A stretch of 64,000 nucleotides of DNA, taken from assembly GCA_965649825.1 (NCBI GenBank), contig OZ287705.1, positions 248,001-312,000 on the forward strand. The letters run 5' to 3'. Source of the DNA: Penicillus capitatus (taxonomy: Eukaryota > Plantae > Chlorophyta). Made by a program: the position numbers and the translations under genes. Below, in pieces: positions 7,459 through 38,100 of this stretch. The stretch's first letter is position 1, and each line of letters begins with the position of its first letter. The notes beneath the pieces were generated by a model. It worked only from the letters and a program-made list of their open reading frames with translations. It ran no database searches and was not told the origin of the DNA.

Positions 7459-7841
7459 CGTTGCTCGTGCTGCCTGTGATACAGGTGATGTGACAGGTCA
7501 AAGGCAGAGGGGGTGCTTAGCTGCTTACCAACATCGGCGGCAAACTGATGGTGCGCATCGGCGGTGGTGCAGACGGTGCATTACGTGACATGGTGTTTCT
7601 CTTGAGATCGTCCTTCTTTTCTGCTCACACATCGGCACGACTGACCCATGTGCCGACCATGACCCATGCCGTACTTAATGAGAATGAACCAAAGGCGTGG
7701 GCAGGGATCGATGAAGGCGGTCTCAGCATTCGAACGGAGACGGTTTTTCGCGAGTGCGAGGACTGCGATGCTTGCTGTCGTGGTTTGCCAGCCGATCGAC
7801 GGGAAAGGCGTTTCTGCGACATCGTACCGCTGCGAAACAGT

Positions 7842-14163: not shown

Positions 14164-15534
14164 ATGGCGCCTGGACTGCAGCATGACGACGTCAACGACA
14201 CGGACGCTGCTGAAGAACAGAGCGAGGCATGCGAGAAAGTGCGACTCGTAGAAGAAGGACAGACAGAGAACGCGGCGCCGACAAGTGCGAATGTCCGCCA
14301 TCTGTAACGCGTCTGACCGTTGCGTCCACGGGCAGAAGACAACGACGTTGCCCCCGCAAAGACCATGACAGTAAGCGGAAAAGTGCAGGACTGGGCCAAG
14401 CAGTTCATCAGGCAGGCTTTCTGGTACGAGTGCTGGCGGATCAGATGGATCAGTGTTTTAGGTTCTACATCGACAACTATGTGCTGCTGGCGCTGACGGG
14501 ATCCGTGGGCATCGCGCTGAACGTTTCGAGCGTCAAGATTCTGTCAGCACAGGTGTCGGTGATGGAGGTGGCGGCGGGGAGATCTTTCATCTGCACCTTC
14601 ATTCTACTGGCCATGTGCCAATGGTCCGACACTCCGTGGAGCACCTACCGCTCCAAACTGCCGCTCATCCTTCTGAGGGGCTTTCTCGGCTCGACATCCT
14701 TCCTGTCGCAATCCCTGGCCACCTCTGTGCTCCCTCTCGGAGAATCGGCTTTCATCTTCAACAGCTACCCAGGTGCGATGCCACCTCTTCTGTCCTCTCG
14801 CCCTGAGGGTATCTGTCTCGCAGTTTTTACCGCACTGTTGTCTTCACTGTTCGGTATGGAACGCCTCAGCGTCTTTGCGTGGTGCGGAGTGATCGGCTGC
14901 CTACTGGGCAATGTGCTGCTCGCACATCCGCCTTTTCTGTTCGGCGGGCATGGGGAATGGGGAAACGAACGGATCGTCGGTATTCTGTTCGGCCTCGCCG
15001 GAACGATCCTCATCAGCTTCATGTTCATCGTCTTGAGGTCCGCCCCGTTTGCTAAGTGTGATGATGGACTGAGTGTGTTCGTGCCGTAGACATGTGGGGA
15101 AGAGTGTGAGCACTCTCGTACTGACGGTCAGCATGAATACGTTCGCGGTGCTGATCAGTGTGCCGTGCGTGGCCGCGGGCTATCCCGTGGCTGCAGGTCT
15201 GCCTGCCAGCTGGTTGTACATCTTCCCGTTCCTGATGACCGTTATCTCGGGCACCGCTGTGATGTGCGCCCTGTCACGTGCTTTCCAGATCGGCCCTCCG
15301 TCGAAAGTGACGGCCATTTGCATGACAGGCACGTTGCTGGCCGCCGCCATCGGTGTCTTCGGCCTATCCGAGAAGATGACGTGGATTTCCGTCATCGGTG
15401 CCGCGACCATAATGCTCTCCGTTCTGCTCGTCCAGACGCCAAGCTCTGCAAAGAGTGCGAAGGATCCGTACCAGGCCGTCGATACTGAAGAACCCAAAGA
15501 GACCGTAGAAATGTCCATCCAACCGAGAATTTGA
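14164..15534 (+). CDS. EamA/drug-metabolite transporter (DMT) superfamily membrane protein, SLC35G-like
   Basis: About 10 hydrophobic segments in two EamA-like halves (LILLRGFLGSTSF, LPLGESAFIFNSYP, FTALLSSLFGMERL, AHPPFLFG, RAFQIGPPSKVTAI, GLSEKMTWISVIGA). ATG 14164, intron 14285-14335, a second intron ending at 14461, and further introns near 14773-14823 and 15038-15089. Confidence 0.88.
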
Positions 15535-17465: not shown

Positions 17466-19439
17466 CATGCTGTGGCTGTGAGATTCGAACTGAAGGGACA
17501 CATTTACCTACAGCAGGCGACGCAACATGTCTCCTGACGTGTGCTGACTCCCTGCTAGGACACCAGGAGCTAAACATTCTGTCTACAGGTGGTTTTCTCT
17601 TACCTGGTCCCACATGAGAAGGATAGATGCGCAGGAGTGTATCCCTGGGAGCCAAGACTGCTGCAAGATGCTTCTTAGCCCTAAAGAGTGAGACGGAGTA
17701 GACTATACAGACCACTCAGCTGAGCAGCGAGGATTCATCTGTCATGGAATGGAGGGACTGTCTTGCTGTTCAGCACAGTCAGCTTGGTTACCTGTTCCAC
17801 TGGCTTGGACATCTGTAAGCGTTCCAAGCTGTGCTGCAGCCTGTGCTGTCTGCAGGTCTGTCTTTCATCCAGTCTACAGTAATCTGCCAAAGTGACGTCG
17901 AATGGACAGGTGCTGGCATCCTCTGCTGCGTCCTCATGTAGACATGAAGGACCCGCAGAGCATCGCACTTTCGAAAACGACCCGCTGGCGCCGTTTACTC
18001 GGACAGTCAATCGTGTGGGTTCGTTTCCTGAACTACGAGAGCAGAAGAGGCTGCCAAAGGTCGTAGAGTCCATCCACAGAGCAGATGACGCTAAGGGCGG
18101 CGGCAGACCTCCATCAAGGCACGGAATGGACAGTCCTCGACATCCTTTGCCGTCGGCTCCATACCAGACCCGATGGGGCAGTCGTATCTGTCGCATGTGC
18201 ACAGCAAGAGTCGTCGGAAATGACGGTCGACGACAACTGGAATGACAAGACGCTTGCGTCGGTCCGCCGCATGGCCGGCGTTTCTTACTTCTGTCATCAC
18301 AGATCGTTTCGGCGGCTGTTGTTTCTTGTATCAAAGCGTTGTGATAGGGCACTTTCGAAGCGCGGCTGGCAAATCCAGTTCAATACCTATGGCTCTCTCT
18401 CTCTGCCGTTTGTGAGATTGACAGCGGCGTGTCGATTCTTAGGTCGTTCGACGAAGTGGAATATACATCTTTGGCGTCGAAAGCAAAAGTATGCGCTTTC
18501 TGTCGATCGTGTCTTCTCGTTTGGCGACAACAACCTAAAACTTCTGCCCTTTGCTCACAACAATCATTTGAGGAACTCGAGGACGACGAGGGATCACACA
18601 CGAACCACTTCGCATGTTGTTCGAAACAAGACCGCATCTGTTGTCTGCGACATCACCACTGCACGATATGGAATAACTCTCGACGGGCTAGACTTCAAAT
18701 GGTCAATGCGATCTAGACAGATCCATAGAAAAACTTAAAAATACATATCTTCTGCCCCACAAGATCCTAGTCCCTTTGGGTATTGTTCCTCGCCTGAAAG
18801 CGAATTGTCCGCGTGAGTTTGTGTGGGCGTATTTCTTTGGATACCGTGCAGGACGGGAGGCGCTGTTGAATTGCTAGATAGGTACATTACCTTGTTGCTT
18901 GAACGTGCCGGCGCATTCTTCCTAACACTCTTTTCCGGTTCATCGTAGCTGTTGACAATCGCGCAAAAACAGAAAACAATGGTATTGTGTTCACCGACTC
19001 ACTTTGACTCAAATCTGGATGTGGCACGACGCAATCTCGGCCAGTGGAAATGTCCTCCTTCCTCTCAGAGAGACACGAAGGGGAAGATCTGCTGACGGGA
19101 GTCTATGAATTTAAAATTGAACACACAACTCGCTTAAACTAAGAGTATTGTTCAACATAGGAGAGCAGATGAGAAGGGGATGTTGTATCGGCGAGCATGC
19201 TTGGGTGAATCTCCATTTGGAGGCTAAGAGGAAGCACGCGGTGGTCACCGCTGTCGACATCTTGGTCAGAAGCAGGCATGTGGATGGTTCATGAATGGAC
19301 AAATGTTGACATCTTTGACTTTATAAACAGATATCACGCCTTCTACTTCAGTCGGAAGCTGTGCACAACGCAAGAACTAGAGACCTGTCCGCAGCTGCAA
19401 GATGTCCGAGTGGTCTGCACAGGCTTGTCACAGCTCTTA

Positions 19440-19917
19440 AGCACTAGGAGCTTCGATAGTGCAAGACACCTCGAGAGAAAGAGACAGAGGCTGAAAGCAA
19501 CATAGATAGTGTGATGTACTCGCCCCTGGCCGCCGGCGGCCAGAGGCGCTGAGATGCTTACTCTGATTGGCAGTGATGAAGCTGTGCTGCGATTGCAATG
19601 AAAGCAATAATCATTGAGAAGACGATCTCGTTCTCGTAATACGGTCGAGGGCGTCGTATGCGTCGAAATGTATACGGCGTCCTCGGCCGTACTTGCTTTC
19701 CATGCAGGCGCGTTACACTTGTGCCTCAGCGACACGCGACTTCTCGGTTCTCGACACTCGAGCAACGGTTTAACGTACCCTCTTCGACGTCGGATAGCAG
19801 GTCTCCGAAGATGTCTTTTCGTAGTGTCTCAAGCAAGGAGCTGCCCTCCGCAGAAAGTTGCCAGTCTTGGTCGACGTCTGTCTCCGCGGTCGACTTTAGG
19901 TTATCATAGCGCCTCAC
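19440..19917 (-). other. Conserved segment C1, possibly a small intron-containing gene or remnant; reading frame ambiguous
   Basis: Homologous to 33640-34105. One frame reads KCNAPAWKASTAEDAVY...LLNDYCFHCNRSTASS, then a gtaagc...cag intron, and ends at a TAA shared by both copies. The upstream part differs from copy 2 by a 1-nt indel. Confidence 0.35.
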
Positions 19918-21306
19918 TGCACCTGTCGATTTTTAACACGATTGTAAATTTGTCTGTTCATCCAGAATGCATGAGAAACACGAGAAAAGCGGCTATACAC
20001 GTCGGCTTAAGAAACGCCGCTTGACGATTTCGTCGTCCATTACAGTGTTCGCCGACACACAAAGACCAATCATTAGATTTCACACACAACAAATACAATT
20101 CCACAGGAGCGTTAGCCCTAAATGCCTCTGGCAATGGGCTTTAAACAATCATTCACACACAGGAGCGTTGATGCTCTGCACCGTCTGCAGATAGGTTATA
20201 CATAAAGCAATTACGCCCACACATCAGGTAAGGATCACAACAATACGTCATCCGTTTGTCCACTCTGAGCATCGGGGGCGATTCTTATATTCAGCTAAGG
20301 ATGTTACGAACGTCACTCCTGAGTGATAAAGAGAGTTGCTGTCTCTGGACAGTTCACTGTAACAGAATGGTCATCGTTGCGTAGAAGTGCTCGGCCACCT
20401 TCCTGTCAGAAAACAGGTAACAAAGGCAACAACAAACTGAAACATAGTCATCTCACGATCTATTGGTCAGATGCGTCGTTCCTCAACGTATCTACCGAAT
20501 CGCGCTGCTCTCCTGTACTCGAAACAAGAGTCCTCGAATCACGCTGAGCGACGAAGTAGGCAAAACCGTCGCATAGAGGATATCATTCGTCAGCGAGGAC
20601 AATACGTCCCTCCAAAGAGCGTCTCGTAAGTGTCCTTTCAATCTACAGTATAGACGTCGTCATTGTCAGGTATGATTTCCACGAGCTGCGAGCTGCGTAG
20701 GTAGATAACAGAACCTGACGTCTACATGGAGTTTACAATGCATCTTGAAACTACAGAACAATTGGCCAGTTGATCGGAATGATCTGTCGTTTCTTTTACA
20801 GCGTTGAGATGGTTGGATGGATGACGGTGACGCTCTTGCTTCTACAACCGGACGATTGGACGATGCGTTGAACGAGGCGGAATCTTTTGCGCACAGTGAG
20901 CCAGAGAGAGGGAGATGAGATCACAGGCTCTCCTCACTCTATCACAGTATTCGATTCGCGAAAGACGCACAGTATAGAACCTCCTGATCAGATTAAACTT
21001 ATAGATCGAACAACACCATCTTCCACTTCATCCAGTTTGTCAACCAGGACAGGAAAATCGGTCATTCTTTACGCCCTGATTTAATCGGGCCTGCCACATG
21101 TGCCAAATCGTGACCAACATTCAACAGAAGCTCTAAAACTCTAAAGACAGAGAATGCCAATCTTAGTTCGCTGGCGTGCAAAATAATGAACCCTCCAATG
21201 ACGTTCCTTCTTCATATGAGACAAATTGTAAGACTTCAGCATTCCACTCTACTTATTGCAAAGTTCTGCGTGGGCGGAAACATGATGGAAAAAAGAATGC
21301 ATGTGT

Positions 21307-24300
21307 TCAGGGAAGCAAGTCCGCGCTCTCGCTTCTGCGCAGCTTGCATGGGTGATCAACGTCCGGATCGTTTTCCACGGATAGCCCTCCAGCGAAGCTC
21401 TTGCATCTGCGCAGTTTTGAGGTGTTCACATCGACCGATGCATCGGAGATGGGGATCTGTTCGACAGCGCTCTTGCACCTGCGCAGTCGGGAAGGGACCT
21501 TGTCATCCAACACCTCCTCGATAGCAATCTGTTCCAGATCTTCGTCGTACATGAGACTCTCTGTCGTCCTTCTAACGGCCGTTTCTGACGGCGGCAACTC
21601 TCTGGCGAGCATGGCGCTCTTGCATCGGCGCATTCCTAGACTCTTTCTCTCGTCCAAGTTGTCTTTCATGACGATCCGATCCACCACTTCTCGACACACC
21701 GGGCACCTGATCGCCTTCCCTGTGCGCAGATTGTCCTTCAACACGCTCAGCGCACAAGTGTTGCAGTAGCACTTGTGTCTCCTGGTGTAGCAGCATACGA
21801 CATTAGAATGGATAGTAGGAATTGCTCTTACGTGTCTCCATGGACGGCAGAGCATGTGGGGATTTCTGCTTCTTGGTCAGGATTTGTTGCCTTGGACGAT
21901 GCACCTTTGTTTTTCTTTGTAAAAACTCCTGTCTTGCTGTTTTCTTTCTTTCCCTTGGGAGCAAAAGTTTTTGTTGTCTGTGGACGGTCTGTTGCCTTGG
22001 TGGCCTGTCCCTTCTCCTTTGCGGTTGAACCTTTAGTCTGCTGCGTGTAGTCTGCTGACTTGCTAGCATCTTCCTTCGCATCGGGAGCAGAGTTCTTTGT
22101 TTTTCGTGTGCGGTCGGTTGCCTTGGTGCTCTCTTCCTTTGTCTTTGAGGTTAAACTCTTGGGTTTCTGTGTGTTGTCTGCTGACTTGCTAGCTTCTCCT
22201 CTCGTCATAGAGGTTGAACCTTCAGTCTTCTCTGTGTTATTTGCCGACTTGCAAGCTGTTTCTTTTGCTTTGGAGGTTGAGCCTTTGGTCTTCTGCCTTT
22301 GTTCTGCTGCCTTGATGGCCTTTTTCTTCACCTTGCAGGGCAGGCACTCCTTGATCTCTGCTTCGACAGTTCTTGGCTTCCAAGGAGCGGCGTTCATGAT
22401 GACGCGATCGACTTGCTTACGGCAGAATGGGAAAGGACACACACGTGTTTCCCCGCCCTTCAACTTCCTGACGATCCTCTTGTTACAGCCCTCGATGCAG
22501 TAGCACAGATGCCTGTTGCAGCAATGTTGAAGTGCAACAACACAGTTCGTCAGACGAGAAGAGACGCACCTGCTTTCAAGATCGTTGTCTAGGGACGTTT
22601 GGCAGAACGGACATCGTTTATCCCATGAAAACGTTGCACTCTCACATCTGCGCAGCAGCGGGACTTGTGGTAGAGTCCATGTGTCCACGAAAACAGTCTG
22701 ATTGGATGGCGCCTGTTGGATTGGATTCTCGACGGTACTGTATGCCTTGACCGCCTCATGTAGCTTATTGTAAGCAAACAGGGCCTTCTTATACGTACGG
22801 TTCGTTAAGTCTCCCCACCATGTGATCTGTTTGGCTTTAGCAACGGTCTGACTCATCGACTGCCGGTGTCGTGGGATCTCAGACTCACTTTTTCCCAACA
22901 ACTCCTCTGTTATTTTTTCTAAAGCGCACATTGCTTCCTCACACAATCCCAGCATTGAGTACGTCTTCAGGTTCTGTTCGGCTTCCTTAACCGTCTGGCT
23001 CGATGGCTCTTCCTGAAGTTGGACCTCTGCTCCATCGTCGTCCATGATCGCATAAGCTAGTTTTCTAAAGACGGACAATGCTTCCACATATCTGCGCCGC
23101 GTTAAACTCCTCTGCGTGATCTGTCTTGTTTCGGCAACTGTCTGTCTGGATGACCCTTGATAACCTGGGACATTGGCGCTGTAAGCAGCTGGAGTTTTCT
23201 CCAGTAGCTTTCCTATTGCAGATATTGTTTCGTTATATCTGCGCACCACCAAGACTCTCTGCGTATTCCGTTTGTTTTCAGCATCGGTCTGGCTCGATGA
23301 CTCTCGTTCTACTGGGACCATAGCTCTACAAACGACAGAAATCTCCTCTTCCAGCATCTCTCGAACAGTCGCTGCGCTCTTGCATCTGCGCAAAGCGGGG
23401 ATTCGCTCATCGTCATCAGCATCTTCGACGACGATGCGGGCCGCCTCTCTCTGACACACTGGACACTTGTGCTTGCACTTCTTTTCAAGCACCTTCGCAA
23501 ATTCTTTGCACGCACAGAGCTGGCAGTAGCATGTGCATTCCCTATACATCAACGTGAGCAGAAACTCATTGACCGTTATGTGATCAGACGAGTATCTATG
23601 CAGCACTGAGCAGGTCGGACCGTCAGCACCACACACAAGGCATTCTGATGTCGTCTTCTTGCAGGTCGATATCTTCTTTGGGCCAGCCTTGCTGGCGACG
23701 CAGTCTTGAATAACTCTTCCTCTCAGTCTCCTGGCGAGCTCTTTGCCGCAATCCGTGCAGTAGCAGAGGTGTTTCCTGACACAGCATGATATTCGGTAGA
23801 ACGCGTGCTGAAGACATCGCTACGTGTTGCCGTGTCTGACGGCGCAGGTGGGATCGATGAAGCATGTGGGACATCGTTCGAAGTAGGGACCGTCGTTCGT
23901 GATGACTCTCTCCACCAACTTCTCGCACACAGGGCACTTGATCTCCTGCTCATCAAGCAGCGCCTCCTTCAGTTTCTTGGCGCATTTGGTGCAGTAGCAC
24001 AAATGCTTTCTGGGAGTTGGGCATTGGTGGGTCATGAATGAGGAAGGAGTGTCTTACGTGTTGCCGTGACGTACAGAGCACGTCGGGTCAATTCGGCAGT
24101 ACCCGCATTGCTTTACGTGATCGACATCGAGGAGGATAACTGTCGCAGTCAATGTGACCCAGCCCCTTTCCAGGAATCCGAGTGACTCGTCCGCCAACTG
24201 GTCACTCGTTAAGAACTTGCGAAAGCCGCAGCCTGTGTCTGCTTTAATGCTTCCGGCGAATTCTGTACAATCTCTTCAGCAATAAATGTTGACTGAATAC

Positions 24301-27300
24301 GATGCTGACTTTCAACTCTGTCTGCAGAAGTCTTCATTGTCGATTTGTGATTTAATGCGCGGAACTCATTTTTCACGCGAACAGAGTGATCTTGACAGTT
24401 CCGTAGGTAAAGACTGATGTTGTCGGAGTTCGAGGTATTTCCCTTCGGCTCAAGTACCAACCTCCTGCATAAACAAACTCGCATGTAGCTCGATAAGGGT
24501 GAACCCGGGAGATGTCGTATGTACCATTTAGTTTCTCTAATGGTGAAGATCTCCGAATACAATACTGATGGACATAGACTTGGCAGTCCCCTCAGCTTCC
24601 ACTACGGATACCAACTGTCAAAGTGCTTCGAAGGAGAAGTGGAATATACGGTGCATGTGGCTGTCTTTCGTTTGACTGAGACTGTCCAGCGCTCATTGTC
24701 CTGGAGCTTGAGTCTTATCTCTGCACGCACGCGGAAGAAGCCATTCTTCATGAATCCATTCCGCCAATCGTTCACTTCCGCAGCAGGGTAGAGTGAGAAG
24801 CCTAAATAGTCTTTGCACAAAGCAGGAAATAACTCTTCAAAGCATCCTTCAGATAAACACAATTTCGATAGGTTACTATCTGTAAGAAATCTACCACCTC
24901 CGAATTCACTCTTGGCATCTGCTTTATTCACGACGGTGAAAGCGATATGAGCCGTTGCCCTGGTCGTGCCCTCGTTCCACAGGAAAGCACAAAGGTTTCC
25001 ATCAAAGCGGTGCAAAATCTCCATACGCCTAAAAAGATCCACCGTCTTCAGGTAGGTCGTCGATGATCACTGATTTGACCATTCTCTGCCATCTAGATCG
25101 AACGGATTGGTACTTAAACTCACGTTCCTCGTCAGAAGCAATCTTCGTTGTACTCTACACTGTGAAAGAGAAGGAAAAGATTACTACGCAGAAGAGGTGA
25201 TGTTTGGCAGAAGAGACCTCGTATGTGGCGTAGTACTTGTACTTGTTCAAAACGGAAGTGTAAGGAATGCCATCGTCTTCTCCACTTCCCTCTGCACTCA
25301 GTGACCATCGAAGCAGAAGATAGACATCGTTTGAAGACAGACCTTCGACGCGCATCAGTTCGCGAGGATCAGGCTCCTTCCATCGACAAGGCACCCGCTC
25401 CCGAGGTCTTGATATGCGCCTGATCTCCTCATCGAACTCTGCTTCATCAAACAGCGTTATCTTGATTTCAAACACCGTCCAGCCATCTTTAACAAAGCCC
25501 AAGCCTTCGTTATCCAGCGGACGCGGAGTGGACAGATCGACTATTTCCCTTTCATCGTTCTGACGGATTACGTGATGGCAGCCTAAACTGTACTCTTTGA
25601 TGCAAGCGAGACACAAGAGACAGACGAACTTATCAATCTGACTTTCTTGCAGTCGTCCCAATGATTAAGAAGTTTGATTTCCAAAAACATTCGAATGAGT
25701 TTTTCTGTGCTCTGTTTTTGAATGGAAATGATCGGAAAGCTCCAACCAGTTATGCCGTTGGCATAAAAGAACACTTGCCTACTCACAAAGAAACTCCAAA
25801 CGGGCGCCGCGATACCTGGAAGACACTCACAATGCCGAGTGTCCAATTCTGATGGTTTCAGTGGCAACGTGCCATGGACTCATTTCTCTCAGGAATCTCG
25901 ACCTCCACTAAACTCCAGCTTTCATGTGAGACAATGCACCGAAACGTAGAATAAAGATACCTGACAGGTCGCAGTTTTCCCGTCCACGATGACCTCACAT
26001 GATTCATTGTTTTCTTGTTTCACTCTCATATCCAAACGAACAAGAAAATAGTCATCCCTCAGAGATCCATTCCCCGATGACGATATCTCGGCGTATGGAA
26101 GAAGTCTGGCTTCGTAACAGTCATCGATGCACGAAAACTCATGAAGAGATCCTAACAAAACACCACTCCGCCTCGAAGACTCTCCTGAATCCGTTTCCTT
26201 TACCGGTACGTTCGCTGCGATCGTCGTTGTAAGGATGCACCAACTCGAATCCAAACTGCACTTTAACTCGAGCTTCATTCTTCGATGAAAGACAAGCAGT
26301 GAGATATCCGTCTTCAGCGCGCTTCATTCCAATACACCTTGAATACGTCAGATCATTAGAAATACGAAACAGTGTCTTCTTTGCACCATAGTCGGTCTTC
26401 CACCTCGAACGCATTTGTCCAGATCTGTGAGGTACCATCACGCGGAAAGAATCGGTACACGAATAACTGTCCGAACACAAATTGCCACCGCAGTGAGATA
26501 GACATCTTGGATCTCTCACTTCATAGCGTGCGAACCACTCGTTTCTTGCCAGCCTGTAGCAATAATCGATTTCATCAACCCATCCAACGCCCCCTGTCGA
26601 AAGGTGATCCCAAGTGATTGCAGTTCTTAGAAATCTGTTGGTACTTTGATGTAGGACTCTAGTGCTACTATCGATTTGGGGAAGACGATGCCTCGAAAGT
26701 CGTCTGCAGAATCGAGGCACTGCTTTTTTTAAAGCCCGATGGTTAATCAGGCTGATCTTCATAGACATATTCAACCAACCATCCTCCATGATCGAAGAAA
26801 GGTCGTCCGCTAAATCCTTATCTCTGAGGTATCGGACCCATCCTTTAGCAGCGCCAGCGTTAATCTGCTCTGCAAACTCTAAACAGAGGGGTTAGAACAG
26901 ACCGATAACGGCGTAAAGAACTCGAGATGCGGTTGTCTGAAGAGGAACCTGTTATGAGGCTGATTTTACCCTTAAAACAAGCATTCGAGCTGCCCATATT
27001 CGCAATCAAAACGCTCAGACCATCTGCACCGAAACCGCCGCCTTCCTTGCATAGCCTCAACTCCCTGTGCAGTAGACATGAGATCCATTGTCACAGAACG
27101 AAAGGCTGCATTGTCCACAACTCACATGTCCTGGTCTCCGATTCTGAAGTGATCCGTTCTTACGACAGGTGGACTCATCTCCCATAGATATTTGACGTTC
27201 CACTGACACCATCCACTTTTCGGCGATTAAAAGGGCTTTCTTGTTACTTACTTCACACAACACTGTCCTTTTTCCAGGAAGAATCCTTCGCCGAATGGCA

Positions 27301-28654
27301 AATGTGGTAGATTCGTTTTCTGGACACCTAATCCTTAATTCCAATCGCAACATGAACCAGTCTTCTGTTAGGTATTCAAGTGAGATATCCTCGGCGGTCG
27401 ATGCCATACAGAAGGGATCGACCTCCTGGGGACTGCTATCTTGGTTCTGACGATCAAAGAACGACGCTGCAGGACACACACGTCTCTTCAATGTATTTAA
27501 CGACGTCATGCCTCTATACCTCTGACAAGATTCTTCCTTTCGTCTTCATGGTTGACGAGCGTGAATGAACAGTGAGCTTGGACCGGTGAAGACGTTGCTG
27601 ACTGTAAACCAACGACCAATTTCTGATTGCCTTGATGGTCGGCGAGAATTTTCCTGGCAGAGCAAAACGAATGAAGGCCGCCGGTCATTGCTCTCGACCT
27701 CACCATTCCTCGCCGCCGATGTCAAATATGTTGGACTCTATCTTCCGATTCTCCTCGTCGAAAATAGAACGGTGTACACGCCACTGCGGCAGAGAGGATG
27801 GTTAGGATTATGACAGCACAAACGAAGAAGGTTACTTCATAGACCCCATACCACAAATAACTGCTCAGAGTGAAAGAGTACTCCACTCCATTCGACGACC
27901 CGCGTCCCTCTGAAGCGTCGAGTCCTGGAACCGTAACTTGAGAAAGGACGAACCTGTAACTTGCATGAGGGGACGTTCAGACTCCATTCGAGAGACTGAA
28001 ATAACGCTGCGATGAAGCAGCGGTCGAAAAACAGGGAAAACAGGCAGTGTTCGCGAAGATTCACCGGAAAACTCTTCAAAACGTTTAAATGTGAAAATTG
28101 CTGACGTGACACTTGGTCCAATTGTCTCTGCCATGAAGCGGTGCCAGCGAGGACTTGAATCTGCAGAGAAGTGCTGACGGTAACGAAGACGAAACGCCAA
28201 GCGAAGAAGAACAGAGACTGGTCCCCTAGTGTCTTCCAAAAAAGACACAGTGCTCCGTGCAGATCGTGGGAGCATTCGGTGCATCGTCCGTCGTTCTGTT
28301 CAGAAACCACGAAACCATTCAAGTGTACAGGTCGAGCCGTTTGTTGCACATAGGCTTCCTTTCTCGGAACTCCAGGAGCGCTATCTTTGCGCACAATCCT
28401 GTATAGGCAGCGCATTGGGCACATCCCAGTTTGTCACTGGTCATTGCCTTCTAACTCATCTGCCATCAGATTGGCTTGAGCGATCTTGTTGGGAGAGAAT
28501 GAGGTGCTGTCGAAGATATCCTCCAATTTGCAATGGATTTTACCTGGTGAAATACGAATGAGATGTTCTCCAATCGCATTCCACAGAGAACCACGATGTC
28601 AAACGGTGTGAAAAGTAAGAGACCGACAGGCTGCTGTCTACCCTTGTTAACCAC
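21307..28654 (-). CDS. B1: multi-MATH/TRAF (6 domains) plus 5 MDM2-type RING modules; putative E3 ubiquitin ligase; 5' end unresolved
   Basis: Spliced frames give MATH signatures, e.g. ESNIFDIGGEEW-KI...FTLVNHEDERKN (27.8-27.5 kb) and WKLRGLPSLCPSVLYSEIFTIRETKW-RLVLEPKGNTSNSDNISLYL...GFLERGWVTLTATVIL (24.6-24.1 kb). The last MATH is followed directly by CGYCRIDPTCSVRHGNT-RKHLCYCTKCAKKLKE...CPVC. Introns of 44-57 nt recur at equivalent positions in each module, and I met no frame break at the junctions I checked. Confidence 0.85.
21872..22292 (-). repeat. Coding 63-bp (21-aa) Lys/Thr/Ser-rich tandem repeat in B1, 6 copies plus a partial
   Basis: KTKGSTSKAKETACKSANNTE / KTEGSTSMTRGEASKSADNTQ / KPKSLTSKTKEESTKATDRTR / KTKNSAPDAKEDASKSADYTQ / QTKGSTAKEKGQATKATDRPQ / TTKTFAPKGKKENSKTGVFTK. 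Confidence 0.85.
22694..23315 (-). repeat. Coding ~147-bp (49-aa) repeat in B1, 4 copies plus a partial
   Basis: Units begin PVERESSSQT, PGYQGSSRQT, QLQEEPSSQT, PRHRQSMSQT and PIQQAPSNQT at 49-50 aa spacing. Each of the four full units continues into an amphipathic helix (e.g. RRYVEALSVFRKLAYAI). Confidence 0.8.
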
Positions 28655-29896
28655 CGTCTCTGCTTATGCTACTGAATCTTGATTCCGCCTAGTCAGTCAG
28701 CGAGAGTGGGATCTGCAGGGAGGAGGGCAGCGTCTGGAACACATGATGGTGCAAAGCAATGGTAGCAGGCGCTTCTGTCATCCCATCTGTTGGCTCAGCG
28801 AACTGTATGCGTGGATGAGCGGTGACGATCAACACTAGAGATCGTCATCTGGTGGATTTGGCGCGTTGAGAAAAGGAAAATAAGTATCCAGACGAGCAAT
28901 CATATGTGTTCATCTGACACAGTCTCGAGCTGCATCCGTGCTTTCAACAACCTTGTGTGTTTCCCCAACTTCAGATGACAAACCAATTATGGACTTCATC
29001 ATCGAAAGCGATTCCTTATGTTCTGCCGATTTAGGTAAAATGATACGAACGCGCTGACGATGGAATCCGATTCGACCGATTGCCTCCCCGCGGTGCAGTC
29101 TTCGCTGATGACGACCTTTGCTGAGTTCTTCTTCTTCAACCACAGGACAACCGTTTTAACGGACTTCATGCATTTTCTCTGTGCCGTACGCCTTTCGCTC
29201 AGCTGACGGACAAACGTCAAGTCTCTGCGCTTCGATCAGCCGCCGCCCTCGTCGATCAGCAAAACTTCCCAGCGGTCTCGTCCACTTCTAGCTGCACAGA
29301 ATTGTCTTCGGGCTTAAGAGACGCAGACGAGGAAGAAAGGTTTATCCCATAACGGCACATTCACTGAGCTATCTACGGGGCATGCATTCTGGATGCAGAT
29401 ACACGGCCATGACAAGCCGAAACACAGAAGCAAAGAGGTCGCATGCGTCCCAACGCCATATACCTCACAACGTGCGCAGAATCGCCGTGTTAGTGACGTA
29501 CCAGGAATCGACGTCCGTTTTCGCTGTCGTCTTATCCATCGGTGTCCACTCGCCTCAAGTCCTCGTCAGACGCAATGATGATCTGTGAGAACTGTCCACT
29601 TCAGAATCTCCGGCGAAACGTTCGCGAACATGACTGACGTGACCGTATTGCGCAAGGAGAGCCACTTATCCTAGACAGCCAGCGTTTCGACTTCTCAGCA
29701 GTATCCGCACAAGTCGGCGGCACCTAATTATATAAGCGGGTTAATTTTGCACTACCGCGCACTTGTTTTCGTAATTGCTTTTCTCTGTAAATATGTCTTC
29801 CCTGAAAACCCCTTTCGAACAAAAGATATTTCCAAGTAAAAAGGCTGTTGCACAAGGCATTGACTGAACGAGAAATCCTCATGGTCCAGGGGACGA

Positions 29897-32069
29897 ATGG
29901 ACGACGCATGGTCGCAACGGTCGCTTCGCCGCCGACGGCTCAGGCAAGCAAGCCCCTTCAAACCCTTGCCGAACAAACAAACTGATAACGTGTTTGAAAA
30001 TGAAGGGATGGAACGCACGGAGCACGACGAACGGCACGCGCTGCTCTCTGGCTGCCTTACTTCGTCGACGGGATTGCTCCGCGAACTGCTGATTAGCTCT
30101 TCACACGAAGATGACCCTTCTGGCAGGTACACGAGCGCCGTCTGTCGTTTGAAGTAGACGGCTTGTGACGCTCGTGCTGCGTCTAGAGTGGAGGCGTGTC
30201 AGACAGGCGACCCGTTAGCTGTGCTAGAATCGCTCGCACCCGGATTCGTGTTCGCCCAGCGGTGACATCCATGGTATCATTTAAGTCCTTCTTTGTCATC
30301 CATCCTCTTGTCATTAGATATGAGATTCAGCGAGAGAGTGATAAACTGGAACCGCATCGTCGTTATGCCCACGACTGCAAGACAGGAAAGAACGTTGTTC
30401 TGAATTTTTTTGCAAGCCACTCGGATTTCGTGGAGTCCTGTCGAAATCACATCATCCTGCGGGGCGAAAAATGCATGAGCAGGTTGGGTCCTTTCATGCA
30501 ACGTCGCTGCGTAACTGTGTGAGTGTGTGCTAGCGTGGTGGATGCAATCGACAATCATCTGAACTTCCCGTCCTGCATCGTCGCCGAACGCGGCGACATG
30601 CTCCTCTCTGAAATGCTGTCGACCATGCTGGACTGTACAGCCGCCGAGCTCAAAGGCCAGCTCTCTTCGGTAAGCCCACATCAATGCCTCCCGGATCGAC
30701 ACAGTATCGCTTGCTTTAGATACTCCGAACTGTGGAGAGGCTTCACGGCAAAGGTTTCGTCCACGGAAGTCTACATCCCGATAACATCTCTTTCTTCTGT
30801 GCCGAAAATCGCTGGAGACTGATCGACACTGGAAGCATGGGGAAAAGCGGCCAACGATTCGTCGCGCTTCCAGCCGATGACAAGTATGCGGCACCGGAGA
30901 TCTCGGCGGCGAGGAAAGCAGGGACGACGCACATACGCCTGAATCCGACATCGGACATGTGGTCCTTTGGTCTCATCGCTTTCGAAGTCTTAACATGTAC
31001 GGACGCTATACCCCAACGATTCGAAGGTTTCGAGAATGCCTCTCTGCCGATTTCTAGGTTCGCGTATTCGTGACGTGGATGGCGTGCAGAACCTCGTGGA
31101 TCCTATTGCGGCAAGCTCCCTCTGTCAGCAAGTTACTCTGCGTCTCTTCGTCGGCATCAGAAAAAGCCCCGCGTTCAATCTGGATCCCCAGACGCAGCGG
31201 TTCCTGCATACTCTACTTCGCAGCCGAAGAAGCATTCGAGCTACAGCGTCTCGTGCCCAGAAGCTGCTCAACGCTCCGCACATTTTCCGTCCTTGGCCGC
31301 GCCTGGATCGGATTCTGGACGTACATCCGATGCAAGACCAATTGATGCAAAACGATTGAATTTGTTTCTGTAGATGCGAAAGCCCCATGCCACGATGACG
31401 GAATCCGACGTTTGCAGAGAGATCCTGTGTCAAATGCAGCAAAGTCGACTGACCTTCTCGATCAGGATCGAGGATTTCAAACCCTTCGAAGGAGAACCCG
31501 TCAATTCTGGAACGTTTCACAACGTTCGAGCAAAATCGACGCTGATGGCCCAAGACAGCCTCGTGAAGAAAGAATCCATCTATATACTCAACGCAAGAAC
31601 ACCGTACCGTCTGAAGATCGCGCTGGGCCAGCAAGATAGAGCCGAGAGCAAGATCGAACAGGTGACGGCTGTCTCCATCAAGACGCCAGAAGGGGAATTT
31701 GTCAAGCTCGAACACCGGACGGACGACTCTTCCAGCGACAACACAGTCTTGGCTTTCATTGATCCAGAGAGGGAAAGGGGTTTGGAGGCACTTCGACATC
31801 CATGTCGGTTGTTTGGCAACGTGGATGAGAGATTCATGCCCCTGACTGTGAAGATCGAGGTCGTGTTTGAAGGACAGCCGAAACCAGCAATCTTTGAGCT
31901 GCCCATCCGGTGCAGAGTGGTCCGGCACTGCAGAAGACTCCTTCGTCGAAGGGCGGCACGATTTCTGCAGGAGAGCGTGGCCAAACTGCCCACAACCGTT
32001 CGAAAGATTGGCAGAAACGCGATTCGATTCGTTAAAACTCTAACAAAGCATCTCGTTGGCCTGGGATGA
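29897..32069 (+). CDS. Pseudokinase A4 plus C-terminal beta-rich domain, head-to-head with B1
   Basis: ORFs 29897-30157, 30196-30522, 30523-30822, 30732-31073, 31036-31359 and 31374-32069 join through GT-AG introns of about 50-60 nt. Motifs VVLNFF (Lys to Asn), HGSLHPDN (Asp to Ser), LIDTG, YAAPE, DMWSFGLIAFE. Confidence 0.85.
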
Positions 32070-32240: not shown

Positions 32241-33639
32241 CGATTTCGATACCTCTTGTTGTGCGTGTGTTTGCACAGATTTCTACTTTTGAGATATATG
32301 CTCGTTTACTGTATTCGATTTTCCATAGAAAGCCGAATGAACAGTAATCAAGGCGTTGCTTGATTAAACGATAGTTCTCGACTTTAAAGACGATCGGTTA
32401 TCTATTGCCTCTCTGGGTCGGGCGCGTTCGGATCTCGGCATAACGGAATTCAACGTCCCGTTAAACGATTGCCTTCTCTGGCCGTGTTTGCGCGTTAGCA
32501 GCGAGAAATTGTCGTCCATCTCGACACGAACTTAGAAGGATGTCATGGATATATCCTGTACCAGAGAGGATACTGTGGAAGATCAGTACGTCATGCGGAT
32601 TGAAGGTGAAGCGCGTCGTCGGAAAAGGAGCAGAACAATCAGATGTATAGCAGCTTCCCCTCTGGAAACCCTCGACAGTATCTGTACCCAAACAGACCTT
32701 CGTCTCGGTAAGTATGCGATCTTCTTCAGAGCGCCTCTGTGTTTCTCGCTGCCACCGTGTGTTCCACTGGAAGCAAGGTCTGGACGAAAGCGACGTATGT
32801 TCGCAACCCGAACGCTGTTTGTTGACTTCAAGACTGGAAATCAGGGTACATCAGTTGCTGCAGCTATGGAACGCTTAGGCTGGAGTTGGCAAAGGTACTT
32901 TCATTTCAGGACCAAGCAACCGGCTTGAGTTTGATGTTGTCTGCGATATCACACCGCACGTTGGGGAATCATCCCCTACGGGCTAGACTTCAAATGGTCA
33001 ATGCGATCTGAACAAATCCATAAAAAACTTAGAAATATCTACCTGTTGCCCCACAAGATCCTAGTCCCTTTGGTTTCTTGTTTTTCGGTTGAAAGCGAGT
33101 TGTCCGCTCGTCTTTTGTGTGAGGTATTTCTTTAGATACCGTACAAGACGCGAGGTGCTGTTGAATTGTACACAGGTGCATTACCTTGTTGCTTGAACGT
33201 GTAGGCGCATTCTTCCGCATACTCTTTGCCGTTTGATCGTAGCTATCGACATTCGCGCGTAATAAAAACATTGGTGTTGTGTTCGCCGATTTTTTTAACT
33301 CAATTTTCGATGCGGCACGACGCTATCTTGGCCAATGGGGATGTCCTTCTTACCTTCAGAGAGTCATGAGTTGAAAAACTGAACACACAACTCGCTTCAA
33401 CTAAGAGCATTGTCTAAGATGGGAGAGCAGACGAAAAGGGGACGCTGTATCGGCGAGCATGCTCGAGCGAATCTCCATTTGGAGGCTAAGAGAAAGCATG
33501 CAGTGGTCAGCGCTGTCGACATCTTGGTCAGAAGGAGGCATGTGGATGGTTCATGAATGCACAAATGTTGATCTCTTTGACTTTAGAGACAGATGTCACG
33601 CCTTCTACTTCAGTCTGAGTGGTCTGCACAGGCGTGTCA

Positions 33640-34105
33640 CAACTCTTAAACACTAGAAGCTTCGATAGTGCAAGACACCTCGAGAGAAAGAGACAGAGGC
33701 TGATAGCAACATAGATAGTGCGATGCACTCGCCCCTGGCAGCCGGCGGCCAGAGGCGCTGAGATGCTTACTCTGATTGGGGGTGATGAAGCTGTGCTGCG
33801 ATTGCAATGAAAGCAATAATCATTGAGAAGACGATCTCGTTCTCGTAATACGGTCGAGGGCGTCGTATGCGTCGAATCGTATACGGCGTCCTCGGCCGTA
33901 CTTGCTTTCCATGCAGGCGCGTTACACTTGAATCTACACGCAATGCGACTTTTCGGTTCTCGACACTCGTGCAACGGTTTGCGGCATCTTTTCGACGTCG
34001 GATAGCAGGTCTCTGGAGATGTCTATCCGCTGAGTCTCTCAAGGCGACGGCACCTGCAGAAAGTTGCGCATGTTGCAGCGGAGTGGCGTAACTCTGGTCG
34101 GACAC
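33640..34105 (-). other. Conserved segment C2, paralog of C1
   Basis: ORF 33528-33974 matches 19343-19765 almost residue for residue over KCNAPAW...DYCFHCNRSTASS. Confidence 0.35.
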
Positions 34106-35160
34106 TCTCCGACTGCGTCTATCGCAACCACGGTGATCTCTGGCGACGAGGAGTTAAGGTAGGTTTCTGGTGGTCGGGCTGCACTATGAAATCTGCAATC
34201 TTGATTCGGCAAGGTTCAGCGGCTCGTTCTTCGCGTTGTACAGATAGTCCATGTTCGGGCGCTACCTTTTTGGGTGCACCGAGTGAGTGTGTGTATGTAT
34301 TCAGTGATGCCTTCTGACAAGGTTCTGTGTGATTTAAGCGTCACGCGGCGAACACATCAACTGATCCGAGGTGCTCTGTCACGGCTCGAAAGAAGTCCTC
34401 GGCTTCTGTTGAGCGATGAAAAGGGCGAGGCCGCGCAGAAGTACTTTCTTCGACGAGGACAATTCGCGGTTCTATAGTAATCTTCTCACAAGCATCATTT
34501 CAGTCTGTCGCAGTTGAGACGACGCCACCATCTTGTATGGTCTCGGAGAGTTTCGTTTTGCCACACCGATGAACACACTCTACGTCAACGATCTCGTAGG
34601 ATCGCCTAGAATTCAATGTACGGACACTCGACTGGACTTAAAATATGTTCAGTCGTTTCTTCGCGGCAATAAAATGGGTAGATGACGGAGACCTTTCCGT
34701 GTCTGACACAAATGCTTGAACATGCGCCACTGACGCAGCTCAGTCCTTGTATGGGTGGAGGGTTTTGGGAATATTGCGTTAAGATTTCCGGGTCTAACCT
34801 ACTATTGCATGCGATAGACGAGAGATCAAGGAAAGAGGACCTTTCTGTATTAAAAGGACAAATGCACAATGTTAGGTGTCACTATAATAAGAATTGGCGT
34901 AAATGACTGAAGAACACATTCGTTTCTTAAGAATAGAATGAAATGTGTTGGAGGTGTCACCGTGGGATCATTACTTCAAAAGAGCCAAAAACTGATGACG
35001 ACAAAACATGTATCTATCAATACAGCGTCATACAGATAATGAACCTGTGAAAAAACTTTGCTTCTTGGTTGGAGAGATAATGTACGAGTGTGTGCGTTGT
35101 GCTGCCTCCCACAGCCAGGTTTGAAATGAATTGTCAATTGATGAAAGTGAAAGAGGGTGT

Positions 35161-38100
35161 TCAGGAAAGCAAGACTGCGCTCTCGCATCTGCGGATCTTG
35201 TATGGACAGTCATCATCCAGATCGTTTTCCGAGGTAAGCCCTCCTGCGTAGCTCTTGCATCTGCGCAGCTCTGAGACGTCTGCCTCGTCCGATGCATCGG
35301 AGATTTCGACAGCGCTCTTGCACCTGCGCAGTCGGGAAGGGACCTTGTCATCCAACACCTCCTCGATAGCAATCTGTTCCAGATCTTCGTCGTACATGAG
35401 ACTCTCCGTCGTCCTTCTGACAGCCGTTTCTGACGGCGGCAACTCTCTGGCGAGCATGGCGCTCTTGCATCGACGGATCCCCAGACTCTTCCTCTCGTCC
35501 GAGGTGTCCTGTATGATGATCCGATTGACGACTTCTCGACACATCGGGCACCTGATCGCTTTCCCTCTTCGCAGATTGTCCTTAAGCACACTCAGCGCAC
35601 AAGCATCGCAGTAACACTTGTGTCTCCTAGTGCAACACATACGAGATTAGAATGGATAGTAGGAATTGCTCTTACGTGTCTCCATGGACGGCAGAGCATG
35701 TGGGGATTGGTGCTGCTTGGTCAGGATCCGTTGCCTTGGACGATGCACCTTTGCTTTTCTTCGTAAAATCTCCTGACCTGCTGTCTTCCTTCTTTGCCTT
35801 AGGAGTAGATTTTTTTGTGTTCTGTGAACTGTCTGCTGACTTGGCACTATCTTTCTTTGTCTCTGGAGCAGAACTTTTTGTTCTCTGCGCACTATCTGTT
35901 GTCTGGGTGGCCCTTTCCTTTGCCTTCGAGGTTGAACTCTCGGCCTTCCGTGTGCCGTCTTCCGCCTTGTTAGCGTTTGCTTTTATCGTAGAGGTTGAAC
36001 CGCTAGTCTTCTGGGTGCTGTCTCTCGACTTACTATCTGCTTTCTTGGCCGCGGAGGTTAAACCTTTAGTTTTCTGCGTTTGTTCCGCTGTTTTGATGGC
36101 CTCCTTCTTCACCTTACACGTCATGCACTCCATGATCTCCTCTTCAACAATTCTTGGCTTCCAAGGAGAGGCGTTCATGATGACGCGATCGACCCGCTTA
36201 CGGCAGAATGGGAAAGGACACACGCGTGTTTCCCGATACTTCAACTTCCTGACAATCTTCTTGCTGTAGCTCTCGATGCAATAGCACAGATGCCTGTTAC
36301 AGCAATGTTGGAGTGCAACACAGTTCGTCAAAGGAGAAGAAGCTTACTCGCTTTCCTGGTTGACGTCTCTGGTCATCTGGCACAACGGACACTGCTTATC
36401 CCAGGAGAACATCGCACTATCACATCTATGCAGCAGTGGGACTTTTCTCAGAGTCGATGCGTCTTCGACGACAGTCTGATCCGATAACGCTTGATTGAGC
36501 GAAGACCGGACTGTACTGTAGATCTTGATTTTTTTCTTTAACTTTAGGAAAGTGGACATTGTTTTTTGATGTTGACGCTTCCTCAAGTCTCCCCTCCGCT
36601 TGTGCTGTTTGCCTTCAGCAACTGGCTGACTCGTCGACTCTCGGTGACCTGGAATTTCGGCGCCACGTTTGCCCAACAACTCCTCTGCTGTTTTTTCTAA
36701 AGCGGACATAGCTTTCTCACATAATCCCATCACTGCGTATGTCTGCGCGTTCTGTCTGCCCTTTGCAGGGTTTTGACTCGAAGGCTCTTGCTGAAGTTGG
36801 ACCTTGGCTCCACAGTAGTTCGAAATTGCATCGACTAGCTTCTTAAAAGCTGACAGTGCTTGCACGTATCTGCGGAGCGTTAAACTCCTCTGTGTGTTCT
36901 GTCTTTTTTCGGCAACTCTCTGACTCGATAGCTCTTGCTGAAGTTGGACCTCGGGAGCTCGTTTGTCCGAAGCCGCATCAACAAAGTTCTTGAGAGCGGT
37001 TATCGCTTTGTTACATCTATGCACCACGAATTCTCTCTGCGTACTCTGTCCGCCTTGAGCAACGGTCTGACTCGATGATTCTCGCTGGATAGGGACCACG
37101 ACTCTGTGCATGCCAAGATTCTCATCCTCCAGCTTCTCCCGAACGATCACAGCGCTCTTGCATCTGCGCAGAGCTGGGACTCGTTCATCGTCAGCAGCTT
37201 CCTTCACGATGATGCGGTCCACCACTCTCTGGCAAGCTGGACACTTGAGCTTGCACTTCTTGCCTAACACCTTCGCAAATTCTTTGCATGCACAGACCTG
37301 ACAATAACACGTGCATTCCCTGGACATTAACGCATGCAACAAGCTATTAGCGTTTCTGTGATCGTACGTGGATCCGTGCAGTACTGAGCAAGTTGGACTG
37401 TCGGCACCACACATATAGCATTTCGATGTCGTTTTCCTGGCAGGCGATATCTTCTTTGGGCCTGCCTTGCTGACGACGCAGTCCTGAAAAACTCTCCCTC
37501 TCAGTCTCCTCGCAAGCTCTTTGCCGCAATCCGTGCAGTAGCAGAGGTGTTTCCTGACACCACGAGACGTGCAGCAGAGTGTGCAATGATGGCAGCACTA
37601 CGTGTTGCCATGTCTGACGGCGCAGGTCGGATCGATGAGACACGTGGGACATCTCTCGAAGTAGGGACCGTCGTTCAAGATGACTCTCTCCACAACCTGC
37701 TCGCACACAGGGCACTTGATCTCCTGCTCATCAAGCAGTGCCTCTTTCAGCTTCTTCGCGCACTTGGTGCAATAGCACAAGTGTTTTCTGGCAGTAGGCA
37801 TAAGTATGTCGATGCGAGGAAGTAAAGAGTGTACGTGTTGCTGTGACGCACAGAGCATGTAGGGTCCTTTCGGCAGGACTCGCACTGTGGCACGCAATCG
37901 ACATCGAGGAGGGTGACTTTCGCAGTCAATGTGATATAGCCTTTTTTCAGAAACCCGAATGACTCGTCCACCAACTGGTCGCTCGTCAAGAACTCGTGAG
38001 TGCCCCGGCTAGTGTTCGCTTCAATGCTCTCGGTGAAATCTGTAAAAAAACGTTCACGGGCAAGCGTTCACTGAAAAGCGTACTGACTTTCAACTATGTC

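Follow-up and report, generated by a model that had tools for sequence, protein, structure and literature searches.

Paired green-algal genes with a MATH domain and five intron-split RING units, the first of them MDM2-like in its ligand pattern

A stretch of 64,000 nucleotides (nt) from the green alga Penicillus capitatus (GenBank assembly GCA_965649825.1, contig OZ287705.1, positions 248,001 to 312,000; hereafter the window, in whose own numbering positions are given) holds two paralogous minus-strand genes, A and B, carried by a tandem duplication of 13.8 kb. Each gene is predicted to encode a protein in which a MATH domain precedes five RING units. We found that all ten units are interrupted by an intron of the same phase, and we are fairly confident of the anatomy of both genes and of the origin of the array by duplication of an intron-containing unit. 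The first unit, RING1, agrees in the order and spacing of its zinc ligands with the RINGs of MDM2 and MDM4. An original prediction, made from the letters of the window, had drawn attention to positions 23440-24107. That interval does contain RING1 to RING3 of gene A (24107-23421, minus strand), while RING4, RING5 and the whole of gene B lie outside it.

Results

Every RING unit of genes A and B is split by a phase-2 intron

The window is eukaryotic in character, with a G+C content of about 50% and short GT-AG introns. We compared genes A and B with six relatives that also have five units (L001 to L006), giving a set of eight genes; two further relatives, L007 and L008, have fewer units. All ten units of the window contain a GT-AG intron, 47-57 nt long, placed between the second and third bases of a codon (phase 2), and an intron is present at the same site and in the same phase in all units checked in the six five-unit relatives. 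The original prediction of a phase-2 intron at an equivalent point in all five RINGs of both genes is upheld by this count (10 of 10), with the refinement that in RING4 the split codon stands directly before the His, one codon nearer than in the other units, the phase being unchanged.

We judged the predicted introns to be genuine because those of RING1 and RING2 in gene A and of RING2 and RING4 in gene B contain in-frame stops, because the lengths of three others (RING1 of gene B and RING5 of both genes) are not multiples of three, and because the RING3 intron shifts in length among relatives. The RING3 intron is open and 48 nt long in both window genes; reading this in-frame stretch as coding sequence was tried and rejected, as the intron measures 49 or 53 nt in five of the six relatives.

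For RING1 the only GT-AG solution joins donor AAC AC/GTAAGA to acceptor CCCAG/A AAG CAT and gives H-G-N-T-K-H. The string first read for this unit, with an extra Arg (HGNT-R-KH, which would make H-x5-H), has to be abandoned, and with HGNTKH the spacing is therefore H-x4-H, as in MDM2. In all eight five-unit genes (gene A, 21782-21790; gene B, 35627-35635; L001 to L006) the RING5 intron ends in a tandem NAGNAG acceptor, [CT]AGGAG. Use of its second AG would remove an Arg and change H-x4-H between ligands 3 and 4 into H-x3-H, so that the tandem acceptor could be an alternative-splicing switch.

Zinc-ligand patterns differ from unit to unit

With its intron removed, RING1 reads C-x2-C-x9-H-x4-H-x3-C-x2-C-x15-C-x2-C, the part from ligand 3 to ligand 6 being H-GNTK-H-LCY-C-TK-C, and keeps all eight ligands. 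By direct reading, the order C,C,H,H,C,C,C,C is present in RING1 of all eight genes and in L008. The H-x4-H-x3-C-x2-C spacing recurs in RING2, in RING3 and, with the first AG of the tandem acceptor, in RING5.

The other units depart from this pattern, each in its own way and largely as originally described. RING2 retains C7 and lacks a normal final CxxC: ligand 8 is Ser in the window and Asn, Lys or Arg in relatives, never Cys. RING4 lacks ligand 3, the first His, and in most genes C6 as well, and it ends in C-x4-C. The Cys noted at the second His position of RING3 is present in the window genes, L001 and L006; in the remaining four of the six relatives (L002 to L005) the residue is His, and this alternation would be expected of a metal ligand. 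Missed in the first reading was RING5, from which C1 and C2 are absent in each of the eight genes. The proposal of one canonical and several degenerate RINGs does not survive these comparisons, as RING1 and RING3 both keep eight ligand positions and RING1 itself has Glu or Asp at the linchpin, the position past ligand 8.

Two further cysteines are conserved that have no counterpart among the ligands of MDM2: that of the PTC motif before the first His, and the leading Cys of C-Y-C, present without exception in 33 of 33 units.

The RING unit was probably amplified together with its intron

Gene structure points to amplification by whole units. The exons between introns 1 and 2 and between introns 2 and 3 are exactly 186 nt long, and intron 2 is 48 nt long, in seven of the eight genes, which gives RING1 to RING3 a period of 234 nt. 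All internal exons of gene A (186, 186, 972 and 681 nt) are multiples of three because the flanking introns are both of phase 2, so that each exon-plus-intron block inserted or deleted changes the count by exactly one RING. Together with the common site and phase of the introns and the existence of relatives with three units and one unit, this period bears out the earlier proposal that the RINGs were amplified as an intron-marked module.

The two 186 nt exons are identical at 41% of bases and at 19 of 61 residues, and Tandem Repeats Finder did not detect the 234 nt period, the units being too diverged for it. The unit duplications are old. In a tree of the units, clustering is by position, with bootstrap values of 100% for RING2 to RING5 and 71% for RING1, and the five-unit array is therefore older than the divergence of these genes. 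The order in which units were duplicated is poorly supported (RING3 with RING5, 53%; RING1 with RING4, 37%).

Relatives with fewer units illustrate such turnover. L008 (positions 7700-8600) is a distant paralogue with three units. Its unit 2 combines an N-terminal half like that of RING2 with an intact CPFC and the tail VIMNAAPWK, which suggests that RING2 may once have had ligand 8; its unit 3 lacks the final CxxC as well as a GT-AG intron in the usual place. L007 (7700-8480) is a truncated paralogue in which a MATH domain and one degenerate RING are followed by Lys-rich repeats and a stop. In this single unit the RING1 tail (VIMNDGP) is fused to the RING4 tail (WKPRTVEEEI), and L007 looks like a putative recombination product from which RING2 to RING4 were deleted. 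In L003 (9580-10000) the stretch between introns 1 and 3 measures 419 nt rather than 420, and no open GT-AG solution exists for RING2 at the usual site, the cause being a frameshift in the unit or an error of assembly.

We next consider how widely the family is distributed. Exhaustive HMMER searching, in which the RING1 profile was run against 1.84 billion representative proteins, yielded no annotated protein at E (expectation value) <= 0.001, a threshold that the similarity to MDM2 itself would be too weak to reach. The family matches were unspliced fragments of open reading frames (ORFs), all from the ENA metagenome assemblies ERZ25074695 and ERZ26696514; two matches, P0018 and P0020, were discarded as low-complexity false hits. 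A word-indexed protein search with the same profile gave 11 candidates. The related contig L004, about 75% identical to the window in nucleotides over about 7 kb, bears a uL30 (RPL7) gene. Its product shows 81% identity with the Caulerpa lentillifera protein and 63-69% with the counterparts in other green algae and land plants, which by the indirect route of a related contig places the source most probably among siphonous green algae, in the Bryopsidales or close to them. The MATH plus five-RING family would be restricted to one lineage, as far as its sequence matches extend.

RING1 resembles the RINGs of MDM4 and MDM2

In a phmmer comparison of RING1 with 177,635 distinct PDB sequences, only MDM4 (E 5e-5) and MDM2 (E 1.5e-4 to 4e-3) matched significantly. 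The next RINGs were those of TRIM5 (E 0.12) and MUL1 (E 0.9), and IAP RINGs were absent from the matches. A profile built from eight RING1 orthologues left the ranking unchanged in hmmsearch against PDB, with other RINGs all at E >= 0.1. The PDB searches with RING1 favour MDM4 and MDM2 and, with its ligand order and spacing, agree with the original assignment to the MDM2/MDM4-type (C2H2C4) class. Profiles of RING3 and RING5 ranked MDM2 first or close to first among the RINGs in PDB, with E of 0.01-0.1, which is not significant. Foldseek with a model of RING1 returned nothing from PDB at E <= 0.001; its top four matches were MDM2 RINGs at E of about 0.2, which are not independent evidence.

The likeness extends beyond the order C,C,H,H,C,C,C,C and the spacings H-x4-H and H-x3-C-x2-C. 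The algal units and MDM2/MDM4 share HG-x-T-x-H-L and CPVC, and past C8 a hydrophobic, beta-strand-like tail followed by aromatics (YF in RING1, W in RING4). RING1 also has CAKKLK. The likeness to MDM2 in H-G-x-T, H-L, CAKKLK and CPVC pointed out in the original prediction accordingly holds for RING1, while the AKKLK run is absent from the other four units.

There are differences as well. The loops are x9 and x15 in the algal RING1 and x10 and x10 in MDM2, and the aromatic pair lies three residues farther from C8 in the algal units than in MDM2 and MDM4. Unlike the latter, the algal RING1 is acidic at the linchpin, has the two extra conserved cysteines and is split by an intron, as is each of its sister units. 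In MDM2 and MDM4 a single RING closes the protein, with about 13 residues left past ligand 8, whereas the algal protein has five units, none of them C-terminal, and about 117 residues beyond RING5. Pfam searches of a 940 amino acid (aa) N-terminal model and the 892 aa C-terminal half (E <= 0.01 to 1) found MATH_2/MATH and zf-C3HC4_3 only, and no SWIB/MDM2 domain, acidic region or RanBP2 finger. The algal genes are not orthologues of MDM2/MDM4 as proteins, because no other MDM2 domain is found, the five units are non-terminal and the host is a green alga.

Within Pfam, PF13920 (zf-C3HC4_3) is the best and only RING model matched by units 1, 2, 4 and 5, and a precomputed match to it exists for the orthologous fragment P0011. 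This class holds the RINGs of IAP, MUL1, MGRN1 and MDM2. RING1 fits the full length of the model, but here ligand 3 is His and a four-residue spacer replaces C-x-H. A 2026 survey of human ubiquitin ligases (E3s) treats RING-C2H2C4 as one of six ligand types (PMC13061254), and the C2H2C4 cross-brace has been described as a feature of Mdm2 and Mdm4 alone, with conservation among metazoans (PMC6372010). Of the 26 papers surveyed that use the term C2H2C4, most concern MDM2 or MDMX, and none applies the term to a RING outside animals.

Convergence or common descent of the C2H2C4 pattern

We give somewhat less than an even chance to convergence, by which a green-algal PF13920 RING would have gained a His at ligand 3 and a four-residue spacer, with no shared ancestry with MDM2 implied. 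The host is a green alga, and descriptions of Mdm genes are confined to metazoans (PMC6372010); no other MDM2 domain was found in the algal protein, the AKKLK run is confined to RING1, the bit scores are low, and the scan of 1.84 billion proteins gave no intermediate relatives at E <= 0.001. Convergence is harder to square with the presence of HG-x-T-x-H in units 1, 2, 3 and 5, which makes the motif ancestral to the array, and with the position of MDM2/MDM4 at or near the top of the solved RINGs for three unit profiles; both the ligand change and the spacing would need to have been reproduced.

Common descent at the level of the domain, in which C2H2C4 is an ancient PF13920 subtype inherited by metazoan Mdm genes and the algal family alike, we consider improbable, if worth keeping in view. 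It would explain why significant PDB matches are limited to MDM4 and MDM2 and why H-G-x-T-x-H-L, C-x2-C-A, CPVC and a tail of [IV]-x-x-[IV]-[IV] followed by an aromatic are shared. Yet the neighbour-joining tree groups the Mdm RINGs with no unit with support, and the same absence of intermediates that was counted for convergence counts here against descent. In vertebrates the MDM2 RING is encoded by the final exon, where an intron like the algal one would not be expected. In mouse, L466 of MDM2 has been assigned to exon 12 (PMC9119546).

All five units are under purifying selection

Pooled Nei-Gojobori estimates of the ratio of nonsynonymous to synonymous substitution rates (dN/dS) among the eight genes were 0.12 for RING1, 0.17 for RING2, 0.24 for RING3, 0.25 for RING4 and 0.29 for RING5. 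The linkers between RINGs gave 0.41-0.50 (0.50 for that between RING3 and RING4), the N-terminal exons 0.36-0.59, and the first part of the C-terminal tail of gene A 0.22. The RING units, including the ligand-poor ones, are under purifying selection and are the most constrained part of the gene. These values make it very improbable that RING2, RING4 and RING5 are decaying, functionless relics of duplication. Such decay is what the loss of one to three zinc ligands in these units, the frameshifted RING2 of L003 and the truncation of L007 might bring to mind, but the dN/dS of all three units (0.17-0.29) lies below that of the linkers, identical ligand losses have become fixed across the eight five-unit genes, and the tails of RING4 and RING5 are nearly invariant.

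Features of active ligases are spread over the units

RINGs that are active as ubiquitin ligases have a hydrophobic residue before C2, a hydrophobic helix contact (L468 in MDM2, a key contact for the ubiquitin-conjugating enzyme, E2) and an Arg or Lys linchpin past ligand 8 (PMC13061254, PMC9119546). The helix-contact position is Leu, Phe, Ile or Val in all five algal units. The residue before C2 is Tyr or Ser in RING1 (Ser in five of the eight genes), Thr or Met in RING2, Val, Met or Ala in RING3, and Phe, Leu or Ile in RING4; RING5 has no such position. At the linchpin, RING1 has Glu or Asp (in gene A, Glu), RING3 has Gln (Arg in L001), and RING4 and RING5 have Arg, though these two lack ligands.

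On balance the sequences incline us, by a modest degree, to think that the protein would be an active ubiquitin ligase. A different account, which we rate as unlikely, would make the units zinc-binding scaffold or interaction modules, for protein or RNA, that have lost E2 activation. It draws on the lack in gene A of any unit with the complete set of active-RING features, on the conservation of three of the five units despite missing ligands, and on the invariance of the extra cysteines. It does not sit well with hydrophobic residues at both E2-contact positions in RING3 and RING4, with the Arg linchpin of RING4, RING5 and the RING3 of L001, or with the recurrence of MATH plus RING in ligases such as TRAF proteins and TRIM37.

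The tail of RING1, ending in YF, runs into C1 of RING2 with no linker between them, a layout that may be compatible with the intramolecular pairing of active and inactive RINGs suggested in the original prediction. The aromatic tails of RING1 (YF) and RING4 (W) recall the Y489/F490 tail of MDM2, which acts in trans (PMC7190642). We regard as a long shot the fuller picture in which the C2H2C4 RING would be an old subtype that survives in a siphonous green alga, with turnover of split-exon units and with intramolecular pairs of RING and pseudo-RING that resemble a single-chain MDM2-MDMX heterodimer (for example, the YF tail of RING1 reaching RING2).

MATH domain, linkers and surroundings of the genes

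The MATH domain of gene A matches Pfam PF22486 (MATH_2) with 43.5 bits (E 4.8e-11; cut-off 32), or 40.5 bits in the long model, and its end shares a single open exon with the N-terminal half of RING1 (24238-24058). Further upstream, the exons at 27545-24302 (minus strand) are coding, as judged from their dN/dS against relatives, with which they have 47-74% aa identity at about 75% nucleotide identity. Collinearity with the relatives reaches about 28.6 kb, and the protein therefore has a large, faster-evolving N-terminal part, possibly with further MATH-like repeats. By eye, upstream segments look MATH-like (GF..DGW...I.L endings), with weak internal similarity; no Pfam match was found for them. 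The model of gene A from our home-made splice-aware ORF chainer has 2,286 aa, of which the N-terminal third is unreliable; coding support from dN/dS is limited to exons from about 27.5 kb downward.

Among the relatives the linkers vary in length, from 256 to 326 aa between RING3 and RING4 and from 140 to 205 aa between RING4 and RING5, through variation in their repeat regions. The motif [LM]RRC[KE]S[AF] occurs five to six times in gene A (past RING3, before RING4, and three to four times past RING5), at about 23400, 22650, 21640, 21490, 21420 and 21330 on the minus strand, and the protein ends ...KLRRSESADLLP. The motif looks like a possible basophilic-kinase or docking motif; kinase ORFs lie near the gene in the window and at several related loci (L001, L002, L006 and L007, where they adjoin the RING gene).

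Within the duplication (Table 1), positions 19404-19703 and 33613-33912 are 96% identical and positions 19113-19356 and 33375-33618 are 89% identical, the remainder being 66-89% identical. Gene conversion and a younger repeat element are possible causes of the high identity at the edge. Rfam and tRNA scans found nothing.

Table 1. Positions of the duplication, the two RING genes and neighbouring open reading frames in the window
Feature	Positions	Strand	Details
Tandem segmental duplication, ~13.8 kb	19100-45500 (copies 19100-31700 and 33375-45500)		20 direct-repeat families, spacing 13.7-14.3 kb, identity 66-96%
Gene A, MATH domain	24601-24108	-	PF22486 MATH_2; adjoins RING1 N-terminally; putative 62 nt intron 24300-24239
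Gene A, RING region	24107-21307	-	ends at stop codon 21309-21307
Gene A, RING1 and tail	24107-23877	-	phase-2 intron 24057-24010 (48 nt); 8/8 ligands, C2H2C4; PF13920 26.3 bits, E 6e-6
Gene A, RING2	23873-23691	-	phase-2 intron 23823-23776 (48 nt); ligand 8 Ser; hydrophobic tail gone; PF13920 11.6 bits
Gene A, RING3 and tail	23642-23421	-	phase-2 intron 23589-23542 (48 nt); eight ligand positions occupied, ligand 4 Cys
Gene A, RING3-RING4 linker	23420-22614	-	~4 copies of ~49 aa repeat (SSQTV...RRY..AL.AF.KL); two LRRC[KE]SA motifs
Gene A, RING4 and tail	22613-22371	-	phase-2 intron 22569-22513 (57 nt); no ligand 3; end CPFPFC (C-x4-C); PF13920 20.8 bits
Gene A, RING4-RING5 linker	22370-21861	-	Lys/Thr/Ser-rich; ~21 aa (63 nt) repeats, repeat family D1
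Gene A, RING5 and tail	21860-21661	-	phase-2 intron 21831-21782 (50 nt), CAGGAG tandem acceptor; no C1, C2; PF13920 23.9 bits
Gene A, C-terminal tail	21660-21307	-	three LRRCKS motifs, final LRRSES, then stop codon
Gene B, RING region	37884 to about 35161	-	
Gene B, RING1	37884-37655	-	phase-2 intron 37834-37788
Gene B, RING2	37651-37469	-	phase-2 intron 37601-37554
Gene B, RING3	37420-37199	-	phase-2 intron 37367-37320
Gene B, RING4	36391-36152	-	phase-2 intron 36347-36294
Gene B, RING5	35704-35506	-	phase-2 intron 35675-35627
EamA-type transporter fragment ORF	14229-15089	+	E 7e-10
Protein-kinase domain ORF	56243-57118	-	E 2e-16

Discussion

We propose that each of the two genes would encode one large protein, with a fast-evolving N-terminal part, a MATH (TRAF-like) domain and then five RING units of the PF13920 class. 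The ancestral unit would have read C-x2-C-x9-H-G-x-T-x-H-x3-C-x2-C-x15-C-P-x-C and carried a phase-2 intron just before its second His; HG-x-T-x-H is common to units 1, 2, 3 and 5 and is therefore assigned to it. Each internal exon would then consist of the C-terminal half of one RING, a linker and the N-terminal half of the next, and unequal recombination in or near the introns could gain or drop whole units with the reading frame kept. Such recombination would have built the array and would account for the three-unit and one-unit relatives.

The likeliest role of the product would be that of a MATH-targeted RING ubiquitin ligase, MATH being the customary substrate- or partner-binding module of ubiquitin ligases that contain it. 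RING1 and RING3 would be fully zinc-loaded RINGs, and RING2, RING4 and RING5 conserved RING-like modules that may support, pair with or regulate them. Ligase activity, the unit that would bind E2 and the pairing of RINGs are what we infer from sequence.

Several results weigh against this account or against parts of it. The match of RING1 to MDM2/MDM4 is modest, at 25-27 bits and 34% identity, with eight of the positions being metal ligands. Against a PF13920 cut-off of 27 bits, RING1 scores 26.3 bits (E 6e-6, model positions 3-49 of 49) and the whole C-terminal half 25.4 bits. Introns of different units in the same gene are no more alike than shuffled controls; because of this dissimilarity, and because the exons of RING1 to RING3 share only 41% of their bases, the argument for duplication rests on position, phase and period. 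No unit of gene A joins eight ligands with a hydrophobic residue before C2 and an Arg or Lys linchpin. With two extra conserved cysteines in the units, true zinc ligation may differ in detail from that of MDM2, a cross-brace in which one zinc ion is held by C1, C2, C5 and C6 and the other by H3, H4, C7 and C8. AlphaFold2 models of RING1 to RING3 (15 rows; predicted local distance difference test score, pLDDT, 45) and of RING1 (ten window units; pLDDT 62) are unusable for ligand geometry or for the packing of RINGs against each other.

Other known systems share elements of this design. Mind bomb proteins (MIB1/MIB2) have two or three C3HC4 RINGs of the PF13920 type at the C-terminus, after ankyrin repeats and MIB/HERC2 and ZZ domains, and have no MATH domain; they share with the algal proteins the presence of several RINGs of this class in one polypeptide, of which unequal catalysis is expected. 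In the TRAF family, TRIM37 and SIAH, a MATH/TRAF-type domain, the presumed recognition module, is joined to one or more RINGs in one protein. The algal proteins differ from these in the reversed order (MATH before RING), in the RING subtype, in having five RINGs, and in lacking TRAF zinc fingers, a B-box and a coiled coil. What the algal genes present is a new arrangement of familiar parts (MATH, RING and tandem duplication), not a new kind of system.

If confirmed, this family would be the first case of the C2H2C4 pattern and spacing outside animals and a natural experiment on the contribution of the two histidines. The array clearly illustrates the amplification of a domain by way of same-phase introns inside it, with genes of five, three and one unit side by side in related genomes. 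For the alga, it would mean a lineage-restricted gene family, probably of ligase type, whose scan with the RING1 profile brought up no annotated relative.

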